This document shows positions 1-37,346 of a stretch of DNA of 64,000 nt, piece by piece. Numbering within the stretch: position 1 is the first letter of the stretch; each line of letters opens with the position of its first letter. This stretch comes from Paramoeba atlantica (lineage: Eukaryota; Protista; Discosea). The stretch is taken from contig CDRNVI010000079.1 in the NCBI GenBank assembly GCA_977017575.1, forward strand, positions 1-64,000, written 5' to 3'. Position numbers and translations under genes: made by a program. The notes beneath the pieces were generated by a model. The model ran no database searches. It was not told the origin of the DNA and saw nothing but the letters and a program-made list of their open reading frames with translations.

Positions 1-1661
1 TACGAGGCATGTGTCCCACTCCACCTCGAAGGGAAAAATTAAACGAACTGACCATTGAGTATGCAAAGCAAACTAGAGTAAAGATGTGCGTTGACCTTGG
101 TTTTAAATTTTCGCGTGTGAGTTTATGTTTAGACACAGCCACTTTTCACCATCGTACGGACCTGCGCCGTTACAATGATCAACTATGGTGTGTCTATGTG
201 TTGGACCGTCAGACCCATGCCCGCAAGTGATGCATCCGCCTTTCAACTATTAAAAGAGGTTATAGAGGAGCTTTACGCCGATCGAATTTTTGTGGCGCAC
301 GTGGTTTCAGACGCAGGAGCTGGAATCAAAAAGGGTTAATGATAACCGCTGAAGAGAGTGGAATAGCTTATACTGTTTGCATGGTCCACTCGCTTCAACT
401 TTGCATGGGGCACATAATGCGGATGGAAAATACTGATGAGATTTTAGGCCTCGGAAAAAATTACGAAAAGTGGCGGGCACCTTGTCCGACACGTTGGTGG
501 TCGATCTTTGACTCGGTCGAGCGTGCTCTGGGTGATTCTAATTGGGAAGCGTTTACGACAAAAGCTCGAATGTTTTCGTGGCTTGAGTCGCTTCTCATTT
601 ATCGCATTGTTGGCAGATTCATGGAAAGAGATGATTGTACGCTCCCCACGGCAATGCGAATGAGGATACAGCTAATAAATGACGTACCTCAGCCACATGG
701 GATGGTCTTGGCTGATCGTCTCATGCGAATATTACGACACGAACATCTTCTTGCTGCATCACTGTCTCCATGCATTGACTGGAACGGACGGTCTTGCATT
801 GTAGGACTCAGCAAGTGCTGCTCGCAATTAGCGATAAAGTTGTCAAAAACCCCTAATAAAGAAGCGTCCGAGTCGGGAGTGCGTCAAGATTTGAAATTGT
901 GGTTTAGTGGACGTGTGCAGGAGTTTTTTAACATGAGCGAAGGTTCCTCTATTGAAAAAGAAAGTGAAATGTTTCAGTTTTGGTCGGATTTATTAATTAA
1001 AGGAAAATTTTTACATTTGTCTAGGGCGGCACTGAAGCTGACTTCCTTTGTTGCTTCTGAGGCAAATTGTGAGAGATTGTTTAGTTCCGTGGGATTTATA
1101 TATGATGATCTTCATGCGCGTATGTCTCCAGAAATGGTGGCGGCAGAAACATCTATTCGATGTAGTTTACGTTCTTCCGTGGAGAAGCAGAATCCGCTCC
1201 CGCAGGCAACAGAAGTTGAGTTGGACCCGGTCGCCGAGGTAGCCCACGTAGCAACAGGAGATGGAATCAGCGCTTTGAAAGCCCAGGGGCAACGGATAGC
1301 TCATAAATATTCCTCTCTTATGAAACAAGACTCCGTGAACACGTCGGAGATGGATTTTCTTTGGAGTCTGCACCGCTGCAAGTCAGTTTTTACTATGATT
1401 TCTTACTAAAAACGGATACTTCGAGTTTGGGCTATATTTTTTTTGGCTTTGGGCAGGCTAAGTGCGGAGGTGGAGTGACGATGGACGTATAAAAACGCGT
1501 GTGTGTTACTCACTTACACAAAAAATACCATTTGGAATGCAACAAAAGTTTATAGTTTTCTTATAGTTTTATAGTAAAATATAGTAAATATAGTACTATA
1601 TAGTAACTATATTCAATAAAAAAAACTATATTTTACTATATTATAGTTTCTGCGAACCCTG
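1..1661 (+). mobile_element. hAT DNA transposon, + copy (5' part outside window), ending in TIR ...ttatagtttctgcgaaccctg
   Basis: ORFs 9..230 and 339..1409 match the 591-aa transposase at 1846..3621. One extra G (~159, catcgtacGgacc vs catcgtacgacc) frameshifts this copy. TIR CAGGGTTCGCAGAAACTATAA (reverse complement) at 1641-1661; TATAG subterminal repeats. Confidence 0.9.
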
Positions 1662-3819
1662 CTATATTTACTATATTTTACTATAAAACTATAAGAAAAC
1701 TATAAACTTTTGTTGCATTCCAAATGGTATTTTTTGTGTAAGTGAGTAACACACACGCGTTTTTATACGTCCATCGTCACTCCACCTCCGCACTTAGCCT
1801 GCCCAAAGCCAAAAAAAATATAGCCCAAACTCGAAGTATCCGTTTTTAGTAAGAAATCATAGTAAAAACTGACTTGCAGCGGTGCAGACTCCAAAGAAAA
1901 TCCATCTCCGACGTGTTCACGGAGTCTTGTTTCATAAGAGAGGAATATTTATGAGCTATCCGTTGCCCCTGGGCTTTCAAAGCGCTGATTCCATCTCCTG
2001 TTGCTACGTGGGCTACCTCGGCGACCGGGTCCAACTCAACTTCTGTTGCCTGCGGGAGCGGATTCTGCTTCTCCACGGAAGAACGTAAACTACATCGAAT
2101 AGATGTTTCTGCCGCCACCATTTCTGGAGACATACGCGCATGAAGATCATCATATATAAATCCCACGGAACTAAACAATCTCTCACAATTTGCCTCAGAA
2201 GCAACAAAGGAAGTCAGCTTCAGTGCCGCCCTAGACAAATGTAAAAATTTTCCTTTAATTAATAAATCCGACCAAAACTGAAACATTTCACTTTCTTTTT
2301 CAATAGAGGAACCTTCGCTCATGTTAAAAAACTCCTGCACACGTCCACTAAACCACAATTTCAAATCTTGACGCACTCCCGACTCGGACGCTTCTTTATT
2401 AGGGGTTTTTGACAACTTTATCGCTAATTGCGAGCAGCACTTGCTGAGTCCTACAATGCAAGACCGTCCGTTCCAGTCAATGCATGGAGACAGTGATGCA
2501 GCAAGAAGATGTTCGTGTCGTAATATTCGCATGAGACGATCAGCCAAGACCATCCCATGTGGCTGAGGTACGTCATTTATTAGCTGTATCCTCATTCGCA
2601 TTGCCGTGGGGAGCGTACAATCATCTCTTTCCATGAATCTGCCAACAATGCGATAAATGAGAAGCGACTCAAGCCACGAAAACATTCGAGCTTTTGTCGT
2701 AAACGCTTCCCAATTAGAATCACCCAGAGCACGCTCGACCGAGTCAAAGATCGACCACCAACGTGTCGGACAAGGTGCCCGCCACTTTTCGTAATTTTTT
2801 CCGAGGCCTAAAATCTCATCAGTATTTTCCATCCGCATTATGTGCCCCATGCAAAGTTGAAGCGAGTGGACCATGCAAACAGTATAAGCTATTCCACTCT
2901 CTTCAGCGGTTATCATTAAACCCTTTTTGATTCCAGCTCCTGCGTCTGAAACCACGTGCGCCACAAAAATTCGATCGGCGTAAAGCTCCTCTATAACCTC
3001 TTTTAATAGTTGAAAGGCGGATGCATCACTTGCGGGCATGGGTCTGACGGTCCAACACATAGACACACCATAGTTGATCATTGTAACGGCGCAGGTCGTA
3101 CGATGGTGAAAAGTGGCTGTGTCTAAACATAAACTCACACGCGAAAATTTAAAACCAAGGTCAACGCACATCTTTACTCTAGTTTGCTTTGCATACTCAA
3201 TGGTCAGTTCGTTTAATTTTTCCCTTCGAGGTGGAGTGGGACACATGCCTCGTACAATTCTGTTAAGAAACCAAGGATGCTCAAGAGCTGCGGTTGAAAT
3301 TCCGAACTCTGCTTTCCAAACTATTATATCCTTATGGTCCTGAGGTTTGGACGCTTGTGAAGAGATGTTTAACGTCGGATTTGCACGTTGACGCTTTTCG
3401 TTTTGTTCAGCACACCAGGTATCATATTTTTTCTCGTGTTTCACTAAGTGTTTCTCTGCGGAATGATAATCTGTCGATAGCCCTCTTGGAACCAAAAAAC
3501 GCTTCTTACTTCCCTCCTCACACAGGTTGCATTCCACCGCTGGTTTCTGTCCTTCCGTGCGCGGTACTTCACTAAAATAGTCTTTACAGAAATTTCCCCT
3601 CGTCAGTTTCGTTTCGGGCATCTGTTTCGGTTTTAAAATGAAGAAAAATTAAGAAAAAAAGGGATAAAAACACATTTGCATATGACTAGGATGGGTCAAA
3701 GGGCTTAAAAGCACCTTGAAATACGAAGAAAAAAAATATAGTTTTTTATAGTTTTTGAAAAAAGTTTATAGTAACTATATAGTACTATATTGATAGTTTT
3801 ATAGTTTCTGCGAACCCTG
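1662..3819 (-). mobile_element. hAT transposon, inverted copy lacking the last 68 bp of its 3' end; 5' TIR at 3799-3819
   Basis: Reverse complement of the + copy (coordinates sum to 3255 near the centre, e.g. 1409/1846 and 1593/1662); TIR ttatagtttctgcgaaccctg ends at 3819. Confidence 0.88.
1846..3621 (-). CDS. hAT-superfamily transposase, 591 aa, intact ORF
   Basis: N-terminal BED-like zinc finger (YF...CNLC...KHLVKH); SLCLDTAT (D), VVSDAG (D), CMVH (CxxH), PTRW; C-terminal dimerisation motif ASEANCERLFS (E). Confidence 0.9.
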   Translation of the reverse strand: MPETKLTRGNFCKDYFSEVPRTEGQKPAVECNLCEEGSKKRFLVPRGLSTDYHSAEKHLVKHEKKYDTWCAEQNEKRQRANPTLNISSQASKPQDHKDIIVWKAEFGISTAALEHPWFLNRIVRGMCPTPPRREKLNELTIEYAKQTRVKMCVDLGFKFSRVSLCLDTATFHHRTTCAVTMINYGVSMCWTVRPMPASDASAFQLLKEVIEELYADRIFVAHVVSDAGAGIKKGLMITAEESGIAYTVCMVHSLQLCMGHIMRMENTDEILGLGKNYEKWRAPCPTRWWSIFDSVERALGDSNWEAFTTKARMFSWLESLLIYRIVGRFMERDDCTLPTAMRMRIQLINDVPQPHGMVLADRLMRILRHEHLLAASLSPCIDWNGRSCIVGLSKCCSQLAIKLSKTPNKEASESGVRQDLKLWFSGRVQEFFNMSEGSSIEKESEMFQFWSDLLIKGKFLHLSRAALKLTSFVASEANCERLFSSVGFIYDDLHARMSPEMVAAETSIRCSLRSSVEKQNPLPQATEVELDPVAEVAHVATGDGISALKAQGQRIAHKYSSLMKQDSVNTSEMDFLWSLHRCKSVFTMISY

Positions 3820-3895
3820 AAATATAGTACTATATAGTAACTATATTCAATAAAAAAAACTATATTTTACTATATTATAGTTTCTGCGAACCCTG
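3820..3895 (+). repeat. Detached 76-bp hAT 3' terminus with TIR
   Basis: Matches 1586-1661 (aaatatagtactatatag...gtttctgcgaaccctg). Confidence 0.9.
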
Positions 3896-4672
3896 CTTAT
3901 GTTTACCATAGCCCTACGTAGGTAATTGAGGGGTCGGTGTACCGGATGCTTGGCCATAACGCGGGCAAAAAGGTCCTTGGCCTCTTCGGCCACCCCGATA
4001 GAGTTCGACGAACTTTCTCAATTTTTTGCAGGCGCAGCGTGACAGTTATGGATTGGCCGTAGATACGGATTATAGGTGAGATTCTGGGTCGGTCCTCCGT
4101 ACTTCAGACCAGCTAGAGTCGCAACTGGCCCTCATAACGCTCAATTTTGGCTGTCACGAAGCGTCACGCGCTGACTGCACAGTCACCTATGAAGTCACTA
4201 AGTATTTGATCTGAATGCTGATTTGACGAAGTCCACTTCGTGCTGATTGTAGTGAAGCAGCTTGTACTTGCCAATGTGTGCAACGAACCGTTCAACGCTG
4301 TTACAGATTCTTCGAAATTCTATATCGAACGGTTCGTCCACGTTGTCTCCTATCTCCTGACAGAAACAATGCGGCACGTTTCTGTACGCCTTCTCGACCA
4401 TGATTCGTTTACCTTTTGCGTGCGGAAAGACAAGGAGTCTGAGTTGGCGAAGCATTCACTGTCGTGTATCCGCCCTTCGAATGGACTCCCACGCCAAAGG
4501 GCGGCCATCTATCATTAACAACACTTGGAAAGTCCAATATTTTGTCAAGTCCTTTCCGTTGTACAGCTCCTTAGGGCCGCGAGAGTACATGGGGACGCCA
4601 TCTAGGATGCTTAAACACGCTACAAATTCTGGCTTGAGGACAGTGGACCCCCAGCAACTTCGGTACATTTCT

Positions 4673-4720
4673 GGGGCCACTATGGGACACTGTGGGCCAC
4701 TATGGGACAATCGGTGCCAC
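4673..4720. repeat. GGGCCAC-motif cluster (second cluster at 7279-7340), possible subterminal repeats
   Basis: gggccactatgggacactgtgggccactatggg occurs upstream and a similar cluster downstream of the 4908-7159 gene pair. Confidence 0.5.
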
Positions 4721-4907
4721 GATTGGACACTTCAAAGTTTAAGTTGTGCCTTTTGATTGCTTTTATGTTGTGTATATTGAGTTCGTAAGGATTTCGTTCT
4801 CATGTATTTTTGGTCGACCACGTACAGCAGTTGTAAAATAGAACGAAATGAAGTAACTATGTACATCTAGAATTAAACGTCTGTTTCACAGTAATGAAGC
4901 TACTAAA

Positions 4908-29022: not shown

Positions 29023-31568
29023 AAGACCTTGTTTACCCGTCTGCAAGACGAAAACATCTGACGTTAGTGGGAATCAATTTGCGAAGCCCAACAATTCCAC
29101 CATACCCAACCCGTAATAAAGCCAAGACCTTGTTTACCCGTCTGCACGATAACATCTGACGTTAGTGGGAAGCAATTTGCGAAGCCCAACAATTCCACCA
29201 TACCGAACCCGTAATAAAGCCAAGACCTTTACCCGTCTGCAAGACGAAAACGTCTGACGTTAGTGGGAAGCAATTTGCGAAGCCCAACAATTCCACCATA
29301 CCCAACCCGTAATAAAGCCAAGACCTTGTTTACCCGTCTCCGAGACGAAAACGTCTGACGTTAGTGGGGAGTATTATGCGAAGCCCAACAATTCCACCAT
29401 ACCCAACCCGTAATAATGCCAAGACCTTGTTTACCCGTCTGCAAGACGAAAACGTCTGACGTTAGTGGGAAGCAATTTGCGAAGCCCAACAATTCCACCA
29501 TACCCAACCCGTAATAAAGCCAAGACCTTGTTTACCCGTCTGCACGATAACATCTGACGTTAGTGGGAAGCAATTTGCGAAGCCCAACAATTCCACCATA
29601 CCGAACCCGTAATAAAGCCAAGACCTTTACCCGTCTGCAAGACGAAAACGTCTGACGTTAGTGGGAAGCAATTTGCGAAGCCCAACAATTCCACCATACC
29701 CAACCCGTAATAAAGCCAAGACCTTGTTTACCCGTCTCCGAGACGAAAACGTCTGACGTTAGTGGGGAGTATTATGCGAAGCCCAACAATTCCACCATAC
29801 CCAACCCGTAATAAAGCCAAGACCTTGTTTACCCGTCTCCGAGACGAAAACGTCTGACGTTAGTGGGGAGTATTATGCGAAGCCCAACAATTCCACCATA
29901 CCCAACCCGTAATAATGCCAAGACCTTGTTTACCCGTCTGCAAGACGAAAACGTCTGACGTTAGTGGGAAGCAATTTGCGAAGCCCAACAATTCCACCAT
30001 ACCCAACCCGTAATAAAGCCAAGACCTTGTTTACCCGTCTCCGAGACGAAAACGTCTGACGTTAGTGGGGAGTATTATGCGAAGCCCAACAATTCCACCA
30101 TACCCAACCCGTAATAATGCCAAGACCTTGTTTACCCGTCTCCGAGACGAAAACGTCTGACGTTAGTGGGAAGCAATTTGCGAAGCCCAACAATTCCACC
30201 ATACCCAACCCGTAATAAAGCCAAGACCTTGTTTACCCGTCTGCACGATAACATCTGACGTTAGTGGGAAGCAATTTGCGAAGCCCAACAATTCCACCAT
30301 ACCGAACCCGTAATAAAGCCAAGACCTTCTTTACCCGTCTGCACGATAACAACGTCTGACGTTAGTGGGAAGCAATTTGCGAAGCCCAACAATTCCACCA
30401 TACCCAACCCGTAATAAAGCCAAGACCTTGTTTACCCGTCTGCACGATAACATCTGACGTTAGTGGGAAGCAATTTGCGAAGCCCAACAATTCCACCATA
30501 CCGAACCCGTAATAAAGCCAAGACCTTCTCTACCCGTCTGCACGATAACAACGTCTGACGTTAGTGGGAAGCAATTTGCGAAGCCCAACAATTCCACCAT
30601 ACCCAACCCGTAATAAAGCCAAGACCTTGTTTACCCGTCTCCGAGACGAAAACGTCTGACGTTAGTGGGAAGCAATTTGCGAAGCCCAACAATTCCACCA
30701 TACCCAACCCGTAATTAAGCCAAGACCTTGTTTACCCATCTGCACGATAACATCTGACGTTAGTGGGAAGCAATTTGCGAAGGCCAACAATTCCACCATA
30801 CCCAACCCGTAATAAAGCCAAGACCTTGTTTACCCGTCTCCGAGACGAAAACGTCTGACGTTAGTGGGAAGCAATTTGCGAAGCCCAACAATTCCACCGT
30901 ACACGTGGTTCACTGACGTTCGTGGGAAGCAATTTGCGAAGGCCAACAATTCCACCATACCCAACCCGTAATAAAGCCAAGACCTTGTTTACCCGTCTGC
31001 AAGACGAAAACGTCTGACGTTAGTGGGAAGCAATTTGCGAAGCCCAACAATTCCACCATAACCAACCCGTAATAAAACGAAGACCTTGTTTACCCGTCTG
31101 CGAGACGAAAACGTCTGACGTTAGTGGGAAGCAATTTGCGAAGCCCAACAATTCCACCATACCCAACCCGTAATAAAGCCAAGACCTTGTTTACCCGTCT
31201 CCAAGACGAAAGCGTTTGACGTTAGTGGGAAGTACTATGCGAAGCATAACAATTCCACCATACCCAACCCGTAATAATGCCAAGACCTTGTTTACCCGTC
31301 TGCAAGACGAAAACGTTTGACGTTAGTGGGAAGTATTATGCGAAGCATAACAATTCCACCATACCCAACCCGTAATAATGCCAAGACCTTGTTTACCCGT
31401 CTCCAAGACGAAAACATCTGACGTTAGTGGGAAGCAATTTGCGAAGCCCAACAATTCCACCATACCCAACCCATAATAAAGCCAAGACCTTGTTTACCCG
31501 TCTCCAAGACGAAAACGTTTGACGTTAGTGGGAAGTATTATGCGAAGCATAACAATTCCACCATACCC
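29023..31568. repeat. Satellite array A, ~101-bp unit, ~25 copies
   Basis: Unit ccaagaccttgtttacccgtctgcaagacgaaaacgtctgacgttagtgggaagcaatttgcgaagcccaacaattccaccatacccaacccgtaataaag (e.g. 29419 to 29520). Confidence 0.97.
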
Positions 31569-32863
31569 GCGTTCGCAAGGACGCTCAACACTCTGTCATG
31601 TCGATACGTGTAGCGTCCTTGGTCTAAGGATGTCCTGCAACCTGAGAGCAGGTGCCTTAAGGTTTCGGGTTCTGAGTTGCAGATACGGCAAGACACACTA
31701 TTTGCACCATTCTTCCCCCATGTTCTGAGCATGGTCCGGGTAGGAAGTGGGGCATCACATGTGTAGCGAATCTGCTCAGTGAAGTGCTCCTAAGGCCGTT
31801 AATGGCAGCTGCAAAATCTTTCGCCTGATCTTCCTCCGTGTTCGTGTCCCACCACTGTATGGCAACCGTGGTGCGGCGTCGCAGAGCGTTAATCATACGC
31901 TCCTCGTTCAGGTCAACGAGAGTTTTCCTGGCGCGAGATCGGTCGTTCAAGCAGTGCGTTATGTGAGTTGCGGGCCGTATTTGTCCTTTCAAGCGTCTCT
32001 CCTCTTCTTCCCGTATTTTGTTCCGAAGCACAGCTGCGGCAGCCGGATCTTTGGATTTCTTTAACTGGCACATAAGGTCTGCAGTACATTCATGCCACAG
32101 TTGCGACAGGCTCCTCAGTCCCCAGCCGCGCGATGAGTAAATTGCTTCGGGACTAGAGCCACGCGCCACGTTAATCCAACGCCGCAGGAAGTTGGTACAG
32201 AGTTTCTGGAGTCGGAGGACAAAGTTCATAGTGATGCACGGGTGGATCGTAAGCGAGAAGCGCAAGCGGGAGATAATGGCATGCTGATATATCCATAGTC
32301 GCGAAGGGAGGTCGTGGGCGCTCTTATCGATGTTTCTGAGCCATGACTTAATGAAAGGACGTAGCTTCATGAACAGCGCACGGGACTGTTGTGCTCCAGG
32401 GGCGATGGTCATGCCCAGAAAGGTGCTACCTGCATCACAGATTTGGGGAATGGGAATGTGATTGACCAGAATTTGTGAACGGCGTGTCATGTAACCTGGG
32501 TGTTCATCGTCCGGTCGCACGGCCATGCATTGTACCCTACTCTTTTTCACTTTTATAGATAAACCTATTTTGCGGAGGATTGAGGATAGGGCTCCAAATG
32601 CGATTTGTGACTCCTTCGGGTTGGTGGTGAGGACCGTGAGATCGTCAGCGTAGGCCTTTATAAAGCAATTCGCATTTGCCTAGCAGATCGAGTCCGTACG
32701 CGGGAAAGTTAAGTGTCATATAACGCACTACTTCCATGACGATAAGGAATAGAGACGGGGAGAGGGTGTCGACTTGGAGTACCCCACATTGCATAGGAAT
32801 TGTAGAGGAGAGACCTTCATAACACTTTATTTGCGTAGACGCTCCGTTATATAAACTACTGAG
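31569..32863 (-). mobile_element. RLE retrotransposon family 2, doubly truncated copy (RT C-half to CCHC/RHD)
   Basis: Near-identical to 34264-35558 at offset 2695. Confidence 0.9.
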
Positions 32864-33729
32864 GTTAGTGGGAAGCAATTTGCGAAGCCCAACAATTCCA
32901 CCATACCCAACCCGTAATAAAGCCAAGACCTTGTTTACCCGTCTGCAAGACGAAAACGTCTGACGTTAGTGGGAAGCAATTTGCGAAGCCCAACAATTCC
33001 ACCATACCCAACCCGTAATAAAGCCAAGACCTTGTTTACCCGTCTGCACGATAACAACGTCTGACGTTCGTGGGAAGCAATTTGCGAAGCCCAGCAATTC
33101 CACCGTACACGTAGTTCACTGACGTTCGTGGGAAGCAATTTGCGAAGCATAACAATTTCACCTTACCCAACCCGTAATAAAGCCAAGACCTTGTTTACCC
33201 GTCTGCAAGACGAAAACGTCTGACGTTAGTGGGAAGCAATTTGCGAAGCATAACAATTCCACCATACCCAACCCGTAATAAAACCAAGACCTTGTTTATC
33301 CGTCTGCACGATAACAACGTCTGACGTTCGTGGGAAGCAATTTGCGAAGCCCAACAATTCCACCGTACACGTGGTTCACTGACGTTCGTGGGAAGCAATT
33401 TGCGAAGCATAACAATTTCACCGTACCCAACCCGTAATAGCCAAGACCTTGTTTACCGTCTGCAAGACGAAAACGTCTGACGTTAGTGGGAAGCAATTTG
33501 CGAAGCATAACAATTCCACCATACCCAACCCGTAATAAAACGAAGACCTTGTTTACCCGTCTGCAAGACGAAAACGTCTGACGTTAGTGGGAAGCAATTT
33601 GCGAAGCCCAACAATTCCACCGTACACGTGGTTCACTGACGTTAGTGGGAAGCAATTTGCGAAGCCCAACAATTCCACCATACCCAACCCATAATAAAGC
33701 CAAGACCTTGTTTACCCGTCTGCAAGACG
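32864..33729. repeat. Satellite array B (same unit, with ~49-bp insertion variants)
   Basis: Direct inspection. Confidence 0.95.
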
Positions 33730-35558
33730 TATTTATTCAATACAGAATCATATTTAGATTTGCAGAGGTAAATTTCTACCTATGCTACGGTCGCATACGA
33801 CGACCCCGCATAGGCTGTTTTACTAGCCTAGCCGCCCCCTTTCCAGTCGGGTGATTCCCGGTTTAGCCAAATAACAAAGCTACTACGAATTGCTTCGCGT
33901 ATGGCTTCAAGTTGGCATTCCGTGGACAGCCCTTTGTCACTCCCAAAAAGGCGGGCTACCTGCCGAAGAGGGGAAGCCGGCAATCCTCTTACACCCACCT
34001 CCATACACAGCAGATGTGTGTTCGGGTGGTCCATCCTGCGGCGATGCAATATATTCTGATATTTTTCCGTTTTGCGGCAGTGTGCCTCCGCGATGTTGTC
34101 TGTCCAGGGTACGGTCAGTTCAACGATAAATTCAGTTCCATCGTGAAGCCTGACCAGGCCATCTGGACGCAGAGTGATTTCTAGGTCTGCCCACCAGCTT
34201 GGGAGGTTACGGAGGCCCTCGAGGTCGAATGAGGCCCAGGAGGTGTTGGGGGAGCCGACGATCGCGTTCGCAAGGACGCTCAACACTCTGTCATGTCGAT
34301 ACGTGTAGCGTCCTTGGTCTAAGGATGTCCTGCAACCTGAGAGCAGGTGCCTTAAGGTTTCGGGTTCTGAGTTGCAGATACGGCAAGACACACTATTTGC
34401 ACCATTCTTCCCCCATGTTCTGAGCATGGTCCGGGTAGGAAGTGGGGCATCACATGTGTAGCGAATCTGCTCAGTGAAGTGCTCCTAAGGCCGTTAATGG
34501 CAGCTGCAAAATCTTTCGCCTGATCTTCCTCCGTGTTCGTGTCCCACCACTGTATGGCAACCGTGGTGCGGCGTCGCAGAGCGTTAATCATACGCTCCTC
34601 GTTCAGGTCAACGAGAGTTTTCCTGGGGCGAGATCGGTCGTTCAAGCAGTGCGTTATGTGAGTTGCGGGCCGTATTTGTCCTTTCAAGCGTCTCTCCTCT
34701 TCTTCCCGTATTTTGTTCCGAAGCACAGCTGCGGCAGCCGGATCTTTGGATTTCTTTAACTGGCACATAAGGTCTGCAGTACATTCATGCCACAGTTGCG
34801 ACAGGCTCCTCAGTCCCCAGCCGCGCGATGAGTAAATTGCTTCGGGACTAGAGCCACGCGCCACGTTAATCCAACGCCGCAGGAAGTTGGTACAGAGTTT
34901 CTGGAGTCGGAGGACAAAGTTCATAGTGATGCACGGGTGGATCGTAAGCGAGAAGCGCAAGCGGGAGATAATGGCATGCTGATATATCCATAGTCGCGAA
35001 GGGAGGTCGTGGGCGCTCTTATCGATGTTTCTGAGCCATGACTTAATGAAAGGACGTAGCTTCATGAACAGCGCACGGGACTGTTGTGCTCCAGGGGCGA
35101 TGGTCATGCCCAGAAAGGTGCTACCTGCATCACAGATTTGGGGAATGGGAATGTGATTGACCAGAATTTGTGAACGGCGTGTCATGTAACCTGGGTGTTC
35201 ATCGTCCGGTCGCACGGCCATGCATTGTACCCTACTCTTTTTCACTTTTATAGATAAACCTATTTTGCGGAGGATTGAGGATAGGGCTCCAAATGCGATT
35301 TGTGACTCCTTCGGGTTGGTGGTGAGGACCGTGAGATCGTCAGCGTAGGCCTTTATAAAGCAATTCGCATTTGCCTAGCAGATCGAGTCCGTACGCGGGA
35401 AAGTTAAGTGTCATATAACGCACTACTTCCATGACGATAAGGAATAGAGACGGGGAGAGGGTGTCGACTTGGAGTACCCCACATTGCATAGGAATTGTAG
35501 AGGAGAGACCTTCATAACACTTTATTTGCGTAGACGCTCCGTTATATAAACTACTGAG
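33730..35558 (-). mobile_element. RLE retrotransposon family 2, 5'-truncated, intact 3' end
   Basis: LYNGASTQIKC...GVLQVDTLSP, frameshifted KAYADD, CRIC...RHLLSGC, RHD, RPDG, ELTVPW, KTEKY; ~100-bp 3' UTR. Confidence 0.9.
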
Positions 35559-36121
35559 GTTAGTGGGAAGCAATTTGCGAAGCCCAACAATTCCACCATA
35601 CCCAACCCGTAATAAAGCCAAGACCTTGTTTACCCGTCTGCAAGACGAAAACGTCTGACGTTAGTGGGAAGCAATTTGCGAAGCCCAACAATTCCACCAT
35701 ACCCAACCCGTAATAAAGCCAAGACCTTGTTTACCCGTCTGCACGATAACAACGTCTGACGTTCGTGGGAAGCAATTTGCGAAGCCCAGCAATTCCACCG
35801 TACACGTAGTTCACTGACGTTCGTGGGAAGCAATTTGCGAAGCATAACAATTTCACCTTACCCAACCCGTAATAAAGCCAAGACCTTGTTTACCCGTCTG
35901 CAAGACGAAAACGTCTGACGTTAGTGGGAAGCAATTTGCGAAGCATAACAATTCCACCATACCCAACCCGTAATAAAACCAAGACCTTGTTTACCCGTCT
36001 CCGAGACGAAAACGTCTGACGTTAGTGGGAAGCAATTTGCGAAGCCCAACAATTCCACCATACCCAACCCGTAATTAAGCCAAGACCTTGTTTACCCGTC
36101 TGCAAGACGAAAACGTCTGAC
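35559..36121. repeat. Satellite array C
   Basis: Same unit; the first ~430 bp duplicate the start of array B. It abuts a foldback-family fragment (36122-36205). Confidence 0.95.
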
Positions 36122-37346
36122 TTTGGGCCGTTTTTGATGCCTTACCAGTAAGGGTAGGAGGCGAATCTGACGAAAAAAACGTCATAGAATGGTAGCTGAG
36201 GTCCCAAACTATCAAAATACGTACCGTCCCCCCCCAATTTAGTGTTTAGTAGAATTGGGCAAAATCGAATACTAAGTAGGGGAGAGGAAAGATCAATGTA
36301 AAAGACGTGAAAAACAGATATAAAATGAAAAAATGAACGGAAAAAAAATGGCGCCGCGAAGCGGCGCCGTGTTCGTTGATGCCGAAACTACACTTGAAAA
36401 CTTTCGAAACGAACCACCTGATGGTTCGCCTACGGCTACCTTCAATCCTCCACACCCTTAGTTCCACGCTTTTCAAGAGTTCTAACCTTTCGTTTAGTCT
36501 TGCAGAGTTTGTTACGCAGCCTCTTGATAATTGCACCCTTGGCATTGATTTTTTTTAAGGAAAAACTCCCTCGTCACTTGGATCTGAAATTGATTGTGGA
36601 ACGGGTTCTTCCTTTTCAGGGGATAAAGAGTCAAGTCTGGTATCGTCATCAGCTCCGCGCGATACATCGGAGTTAAGACCCTTTATTTCCCCTACCGCTT
36701 CTAAAAGCTTTGCGTCTAACCCAGGCGACAATTGTCCATTTCATTGCGCTTCGGTACTATTTTTTCGGTGTTCTCTGTGGTAATCTGATTATGCCTGAAA
36801 AAACATTAACCGAAAACAAGTCTCGCAGCTCTTTCAAGGTTGGTTTCAAGGTTGGTTTTTCGTGAACGGGGTTGTAAAAAAAATTTGTACGCCACTTTCT
36901 ACGAAGCTTTGAAATTAAACACTAAATAGGGGTGGGCAAGGTACTAAATAGTAAATAGGGGGGGACGGCAATAGTAATCGCTTTTGGGAAATATTGTTTT
37001 TGCTTTTTCTTTGGTCGAAAATATATAATTTTTAGGTCATCCCTAAAATTTCGGGAAGTTTGACCATGGAAATATTCGCTATGGGAACACGGTTTAGATA
37101 GAAACGGAATATCGTCTTCTCGTAACCAGTCTCACGTGGTGTACTCAGCGACAGATTGTATTCCTCACCTTGAGCGAGACGGATCCTCTTGTGGGAATCA
37201 TTGACCCACTTTTACATTATTTTGTTTCGCAAATAGCGCTTTTGAACCTTTCATCGAAGAGGGGTTTCCTGATCACTTACTCTATTCGCATGAAAAAGAA
37301 ATCCTAAAAAAGATAACATTAGACAACTGCGTCTTCTTTTTATGAA

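Follow-up and report, generated by a model that had tools for sequence, protein, structure and literature searches.

A hAT double element formed by self-insertion in the genome of Paramoeba atlantica

The window analysed here is the whole stretch of 64,000 nucleotides that begins at the first base of Paramoeba atlantica contig CDRNVI010000079.1 (hereafter C79), and its left end is occupied by a composite built from two copies of one transposable element (Table 1). A direct copy, cut by the contig end at window position 1, is joined at its 3' tip to an inverted copy. The reverse complement of window positions 1662-3254 is 100% identical to positions 1-1593 save for two 1-bp indels, near 158 and 336, and the repeat finder also returned a 78-nt perfect direct repeat (1586-1663 = 3820-3897). 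Three same-facing tips ending in ...ctgcgaaccctg are found at 1661, 3819 and 3895. The TIR, with 21 perfect matches between the two element ends, starts with CAGGG as in Ac. The breakpoints in the target are exactly 8 bp apart, and the strand chemistry fits, as each ...CCCTG-3' tip is joined to the opposite strand of the target. Chance cannot have caused this geometry, because both junctions (1661/1662 and 3819/3820) coincide with the final base of a TIR and the spacing of the two target breakpoints equals the TSD length of the family, 8 bp, as measured in six other copies. An earlier note on this DNA had described an inverted duplication with an exact 8-bp TSD and three same-facing ends, and all its coordinates were reproduced from the sequence and by the repeat finder.

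Table 1. Parts of the composite element, in window coordinates
Feature	Position	Strand	Evidence
Direct hAT copy, last 1,661 bp of the complete element	1..1661	+	sequence, repeat finder, C31 comparison
Transposase frame of the direct copy, C-terminal part	339..1409	+	ORF list, direct indexing
Target octamer T (aaatatag), native site, 76 bp from the 3' tip	1586..1593	+	direct indexing
X, 68-bp 3' terminus of the direct copy; spacer of the palindrome	1594..1661	+	
3' TIR of the direct copy, 21 bp	1641..1661	+	
Inverted copy, element positions 1-2158 (all but the last 68 bp)	1662..3819	-	repeat finder
ctatattt, reverse complement of T; start of the inverted copy	1662..1669		direct indexing
591-aa hAT transposase ORF of the inverted copy	1846..3621	-	ORF list, Pfam
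5' TIR of the inverted copy; directly abuts T with its tip at 3819	3799..3819	-	
Second copy of T (aaatatag), the internal TSD	3820..3827	+	direct indexing
Displaced X, identical to 1594-1661; third same-facing TIR tip at 3895	3828..3895	+	
cttatgtt, right TSD of the whole 4,460-bp composite	3896..3903	+	direct indexing

The outer borders of the composite could be followed on two other contigs. Contig C31 terminates within the direct copy and supplies the 5' part missing from the window, the first 1,212 bp of the element lying at C31:42469-43680 and overlapping window positions 1-646. A 5' TIR with cttatgtt in front of it had been predicted by the earlier note to the left of the window, and it is present, the left TSD being at C31:42461-42468 and the TIR following right after. 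On contig C56, the left flank, a single cttatgtt (C56:242217-242224) and the right flank follow one another without an element. When flank sequences were compared, C31 and C79 were collinear with C56 over at least 19 kb on each side; a collinearity probe taken from window positions 30000-33000 matched repeats only. The borders on the three contigs thus place in one insertion site, and absent from its counterpart, a 4,460-bp composite of the order flankL-cttatgtt-(complete copy, 2,226 bp)-(inverted copy, positions 1-2158)-(aaatatag + 68-bp terminus)-cttatgtt-flankR, with inverted arms of 2,158 bp and a spacer of 68 bp. The two 1-bp indels are probably consensus errors at the contig end, because both are absent from C31 and from the inverted copy. 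The composite also accounts for C31 and C79 not being joined, which may be of use to assembly curators.

The element belongs to the hAT superfamily by its 8-bp TSDs, its CAGGG TIRs and its dimerisation domain. This last is recognized in the 591-aa ORF as Pfam Dimer_Tnp_hAT (PF05699) at residues 438-508, with a score of 29 bits, above the gathering cut-off of 21.4. For an RNase-H-like DDE core related to that of Hermes or Ac, DUF659 reaches just 17.5 bits, below its cut-off of 34.7. A search of solved structures gave insignificant matches to Hermes chains (E 0.14-0.24), confined to the C-terminal domain, and a word search found no protein relatives of the transposase at E 0.001 or better. The direct copy, when the C31 sequence is used for the overlap, likewise encodes a 591-aa ORF, in which R78Q is the sole difference. 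The inverted copy had been credited earlier with an intact transposase of 591 aa; its frame is indeed open over that length, but the copy in contig C48 encodes 676 aa, which qualifies the word intact. The family comprises several full-length copies and many deleted ones in this genome, and six other copies (in C48, C51, C60, C66, C84 and C30) have single termini flanked by 8-bp TSDs (tccaaaag, ctaataaa twice, agtattag, cattattt and caaaatag).

The arms of the composite are at least 99.8% identical and differ by two substitutions and one homopolymer indel, all three within the outer 431 bp (the outer 20%) of the arms; two private G-to-A changes are found in the inverted copy, at element positions 369 and 431. 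Both arms lack a 122-200-bp segment that is present in all three of the other full-length copies. The next closest copy, that of C48, is about 99.1% identical and carries an additional 122-bp segment missing from both arms, and on these grounds another extant copy as donor was ruled out. Judged by their sequences, each arm has its closest relative in the other, because they show so few differences and share the absence of the 122-200-bp segment, as a sister origin would predict.

The locus is a genuine hAT double element made by transposase self-insertion into the element's own 3' subterminal region. The earlier note had ascribed it to the joint insertion of a 3' end and a 5' end contributed by two separate copies; self-insertion with an 8-bp duplication holds, but the joint-end route is not fixed by the junctions, which are identical in both isomers of the structure considered below. 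A hAT element had inserted at the target cttatgtt, and a 5' and a 3' tip, both of that element's lineage, later attacked aaatatag, at its place 76 bp from the 3' tip, with the usual 8-bp stagger. We consider a one-step hybrid-end (sister-chromatid) transposition to be the most likely route, with a probability of roughly 0.47. Following replication, the 5' end would have been cut on one chromatid and the 3' end on the sister, and the two would have synapsed and inserted into the aaatatag of the first chromatid's element; the freed segment from the 5' TIR to the target would thereby have been inverted and the 76-bp tail left behind it, while the reciprocal product, an excision chromatid, would have segregated away. 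If C56 is the allele, its empty site would imply that the second copy came from the sister chromatid and not from the homologue.

The feature expected of hybrid ends is present: one staggered 8-bp target is joined on one side to a 5' tip and on the other to a 3' tip from a different copy. The order as assembled is the direct one-step product of this route. The retained outer TSD and the sister-level identity of the arms also fit, although a nested insertion predicts both too. In maize, alternative transposition of hAT ends on sister chromatids is known to produce inverted duplications with 8-bp TSDs (PMC3744419; bioRxiv 10.1101/2020.01.07.897926). We count against the hybrid-end route that the composite sits at the end of a contig, at the point where the assembly broke, and that the orientation of the spacer relative to the flanks is known at the level of the assembled contig. 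Also, a single element generally transposes by its standard cis ends more often than by hybrid ends.

The foremost alternative, whose chance we would put somewhat short of even, starts from a true double Ds, made by ordinary nested insertion in inverted orientation, in which the 68-bp spacer later flipped. A full-length copy, either a sister or a nearly identical one, would have excised normally and inserted inverted into the resident's aaatatag, with a product of the order B-A-T-rc(X)-rc(T)-rc(A)-rc(B)-T-X, and X would then have been turned by intramolecular recombination, by replication template switching or by the assembler's choice of orientation at the contig end. This product and the assembled isomer differ only in the orientation of X between the 2,158-bp arms and have identical junction sequences; the nested junction was considered as a discriminator and is uninformative, being the reverse complement of the observed one. 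The nested route predicts the junctions, the internal TSD and the outer TSD identically, and standard transposition suffices for it. Long, perfect and closely spaced inverted repeats are prone to recombination, which counts in favor of a flip, as do the assembly break exactly at the composite and the location of the arm differences in the outer 20%, as if the inner parts had been homogenised. If real, this confinement to the outer 431 bp is a hint of conversion between the arms close to the centre, and so of flipping. It was noted in a study of Galileo that hybrid-element insertion and recombination between two copies yield nearly identical products (PMC2775673). However, the nested route with a flip takes two events as against one for the hybrid-end route, and the contig that runs from the unique right flank via an arm into the spacer has the non-nested orientation. 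Other 2.4-kb copies were crossed mid-contig, so the reads were probably long enough to anchor the orientation of the spacer. The junctions and TSD fit those of a double Ds, whereas the structure matches one only after a flip of the 68-bp terminus beside the left arm.

An assembly artefact, in which the true state is a simple single insertion and a chimeric or fold-back read mimicked a molecule that does not exist, is very unlikely and was rejected as the main reading. The palindrome does lie at the very start of C79, C31 terminates within the same element, and the consensus there is poor, with both 1-bp indels in the first 340 bases. However, the 3819/3820 junction, in which a TIR tip is joined to an internal octamer, lies 3.8 kb into the contig and would be left unexplained, and the turn-around coincides with the tip of a TIR, the offset being precisely 8 bp. 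From a single element, a fold-back read would instead carry the flank together with the flank's reverse complement. C31 and C56 fix the outer borders independently. A break at the 3' tip followed by fold-back priming was likewise rejected, as 1661/1662 shows no microhomology for such priming and the 3819/3820 junction could not arise in that way. The weakest proposal, that an unrelated genomic copy inserted or that a doubled terminus is native to the family, has the several full-length and many deleted copies in its favor but is largely refuted and hardly credible, given that all other complete copies are single-ended (the six named above rule out a native doubled terminus, in the comparison of genomic copies that the earlier note had proposed), that the C48 copy, though next closest, is set apart by its divergence and extra segment, that the junction of the 5' TIR with aaatatag is unique in the genome, and that among the 76 exact TIR ends listed element sequence adjoins only two, both in C79.

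In the maize double Ds, the chromosome-breaking 'state I' structure, one Ds sits in inverted orientation within an identical Ds. The present composite resembles it in the hAT superfamily, the inverted self-insertion, the 8-bp TSD of an internal target, the near-identical copies that form long inverted arms, and the clustering of 5' and 3' tips. It differs in that its complete copy occupies an edge rather than the middle (as assembled, with the 68-bp segment in the opposite orientation), in that only 76 bp separate the target from the tip, which makes the structure a nearly perfect palindrome, and in that the host is a protist, where breakage is only a prediction. The maize B73 genome yielded no double Ds, and selection against chromosome-breaking nested Ds has been suggested (PMC3260210). 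The cooperation of 5' and 3' ends from different chromatids would be shared with Ac/fAc sister-chromatid transposition in maize and with hybrid element insertion of the Drosophila P element. The inverted duplication bounded by an 8-bp TSD, with the original flanks kept, is also as in alternative transposition (PMC3744419; PMC2775673; bioRxiv 10.1101/2020.01.07.897926). Unlike alternative transposition of two linked elements, the ends here would come from two sisters of one element, and the target is inside the element itself; therefore, only element DNA was duplicated and host DNA was not rearranged. Inverted transposon duplications at Mu killer and 'Ac killer' loci give rise to hairpin RNA and silencing of the family. 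The composite is like these in that its long inverted duplication takes in a TIR and the transposase gene, but unlike them both of its arms have an open transposase frame. The genome also encodes Piwi/Argonaute ORFs of 973-976 aa with a Piwi domain (118 bits).

Two standard end pairs appear to have been kept, one for the left copy and one for the composite as a whole. [quoted passage not shown] The more far-reaching proposal, that a fresh one-step sister-chromatid self-insertion is now both a chromosome-breakage site and a 'killer' locus, whose 2.1-kb palindrome transcript would be channelled via Argonaute into silencing of the hAT family, seems to us improbable.

The mechanism itself is not new and has been textbook knowledge since the work on the Drosophila P element and on maize Ac/Ds, where this kind of structure is classic; the locus is a clean example from nature. 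As a hAT self-insertion it is well documented, with both copies of the outer TSD, an empty counterpart and near-identical arms, and would be suited to measuring palindrome flip-flop, aberrant transposition and hairpin-triggered silencing from long reads. The composite shows recent mobility of this hAT family, in a protist lineage whose DNA-transposon activity has been little described.

The repeat finder and direct indexing of the window place the octamers, the 8-bp offset, the doubled 68-bp terminus and the three same-facing tips exactly where the earlier note had read them, and the 591-aa frame that it reported for the inverted hAT copy is present as an ORF. Positions 1-1593, which begin at the start of contig C79 (window = C79:1-64000), are the reverse complement of 1662-3254 with 100% identity except for two 1-bp indels, and 1586-1663 is repeated exactly and directly at 3820-3897. 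The direct copy, inverted copy and tail form a composite of 2,226 + 2,158 + 76 = 4,460 bp. With the element written as B-A-T-X, where T is the octamer, X the 68-bp 3' terminus, B and A the remaining parts and rc the reverse complement, the order at the locus is B-A-T-X / rc(T)-rc(A)-rc(B) / T-X. The ...CCCTG-3' tips sit on opposite target strands, 8 bp apart, as in normal strand-transfer chemistry.

Coordinates of the composite and of related insertions (plain numbers, window; C numbers, contigs of the same assembly)
Feature	Position	Strand	Basis
aaatatag	1586-1593, 3820-3827		direct indexing of window
ctatattt	1662-1669		direct indexing of window
Identical 68-bp termini	1594-1661, 3828-3895		direct indexing of window
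cttatgtt	3896-3903		direct indexing of window
Three ...ctgcgaaccctg tips, same-facing	1661, 3819, 3895		
591-aa ORF	1846-3621	minus	
~1-kb non-autonomous relatives	C62:66371-67506, C50:29962-31097, at least 15 similar loci		
Recurrent insertions, examples	C26:466335 / C26:478371 / C59:337353; C67 / C185; C50 / C62; C20 / C63; C19 / C43; C44 / C66		

The direct copy continues on C31 (43,680 bp), which terminates within it and whose final 646 bases overlap window 1-646. The two indels look like contig-end consensus errors in C79, because at both positions C31 has the sequence of the inverted copy; with the overlap taken from C31, a 591-aa frame is open in the direct copy too, with R78Q as the difference. 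The cttatgtt predicted before a left 5' TIR was found directly before the TIR at C31:42469. On C56 the left flank (98% identity) runs through a single cttatgtt straight into the right flank (94% identity), with no footprint, and C31 plus C79 are collinear with C56 over at least 19 kb per side (94-99% identity, with indels). The composite fills one insertion site and is missing from an allelic or paralogous counterpart. The site lies within repeated DNA. Over its first 165 bp (3896-4060) the right flank matches C81, C62, C117, C29 and C26 at 83-90%, and the last ~65 bp of the left flank (about 1418-1482 of the left-flank stretch L006) match C52, C8, C24 and C11 at 79-83%. Just to the right, 10-bp units (gggccactat / gggacactgt; repeat family D2) form a short array at 4674-4733. 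Farther along, within 29023-36124, 31568-33000 recurs at 34263-35695 with 100% identity, and ~1.3 kb of it (31568-32865) is also on C37, C21, C11, C4, C41 and C99 at 97-98%.

The composite is a near-perfect 4.4-kb palindrome. Such a palindrome probably folds on itself and looks like a missed-adapter read, a kind that assemblers often trim or split, and this may have broken the assembly between C31 and C79; other 2.4-kb copies of the family are traversed mid-contig.

The 591-aa ORF has a hAT dimerisation domain (29 bits; cut-off 21.4), and a perfect 21-bp TIR starting with CAGGG is common to both element ends by direct indexing. Its catalytic core is too divergent to give a significant Pfam or Hermes score, and a word search across 5.8 billion proteins found no relatives. 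In each of six other copies the termini are single and the 8-bp TSDs perfect, so the doubled terminus is not native to the family. Internally deleted copies and ~1-kb non-autonomous relatives are also present. The latter are probably mobilised by this transposase, since they have the TIR tips of the full-length element and ends similar to it (5' subterminal region 76-78% identical, 76-bp 3' end 99%). Targets in the family are A/T-rich by eye, and the element's own subterminal repeats, being likewise A/T-rich, are plausible targets. In the genome-wide TIR-end list many identical-flank insertions recur on two or three contigs, as if the assembly held both haplotypes or large recent duplications, unlike the composite, whose sole counterpart is the empty site.

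Two G-to-A changes (element positions 369 and 431) are private to the inverted copy, the other arm difference being one additional A in the TIR of C31. A 122-200-bp segment that C48, C51 and C60 carry near element position 1968 is absent from both copies, and the closest other copy in the assembly, on C48, is ~99.1% identical, none being as near as the two are to each other. Given these few differences, the common absence and the lack of so close a relative, the second copy evidently derives from the lineage of the resident element, its sister chromatid being the simplest source. The extra segment (in the C48 copy, L002:1243-1560; same region in stretches L003 and L004) lies near the stop codon; in C48 it is flanked by a duplicated ~48-bp stretch and starts much like the TIR (tttctgcggaccc); the C48 ORF including it is 676 aa versus 591 aa, the first 590 aa being 98% identical.

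We tentatively favour, at a probability of roughly 0.47, formation by hybrid-end or sister-chromatid transposition, documented for Ac/Ds and P elements (bioRxiv 10.1101/2020.01.07.897926; PMC2775673; PMC3744419). In such an event the element's 5' tip on one chromatid and the 3' tip on the sister would insert together into T of the first chromatid's element, giving the assembled order exactly, and the excision chromatid would be lost. Also quite conceivable, if short of an even chance, is ordinary nesting of an inverted copy (double Ds, reading B-A-T-rc(X)-rc(T)-rc(A)-rc(B)-T-X), with a later spacer flip: standard transposition is expected at a higher rate, and all three arm differences cluster in the outer 431 bp, a hint of arm-to-arm exchange, but the assembled order needs only one step by the sister-chromatid route and comes from a contig that unique right-flank sequence anchors. 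The two routes differ in the orientation of X alone, between 2,158-bp perfect inverted arms, and one crossover between the arms, or one template switch, is enough to interconvert the isomers, as is an assembler's orientation choice. All junction sequences are common to both because the centres are reverse complements of each other, and a search for a discriminating 'nested' junction recovered the observed junction, read from the opposite strand; the outer TSD, empty site and arm identity are likewise predicted by both. The junctions and TSDs bear out a transposase-made self-insertion of the double-Ds-like kind, as the earlier note proposed; the specific route that it gave, with ends of two copies moving together, is a candidate, as the junctions fit both isomers. 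An assembly artefact is highly improbable, and other readings are more so.

The composite belongs to an already known structural class and its novelty is modest. The left copy would keep a standard 5'/3' tip pair and the whole composite another, and among the tips at 1661, 3819 and 3895 there would be 5'/3' pairs in direct orientation, an arrangement shared with maize structures in which sister-chromatid transposition and breakage occur (PMC3744419). Piwi-domain proteins are encoded in the genome; ORFs of the Piwi/Argonaute type, 973-976 aa long, number three on C29 (C29:781160-806353) and two on C49 (C49:216883-238621), and their identical scores and 11-24 kb spacing point to a putative tandem duplication of an Argonaute gene. 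In maize, Ac is silenced by comparable inverted duplications of itself (bioRxiv 10.1101/2020.01.07.897926), and read-through transcription of the composite, if any, would yield a long hairpin RNA.
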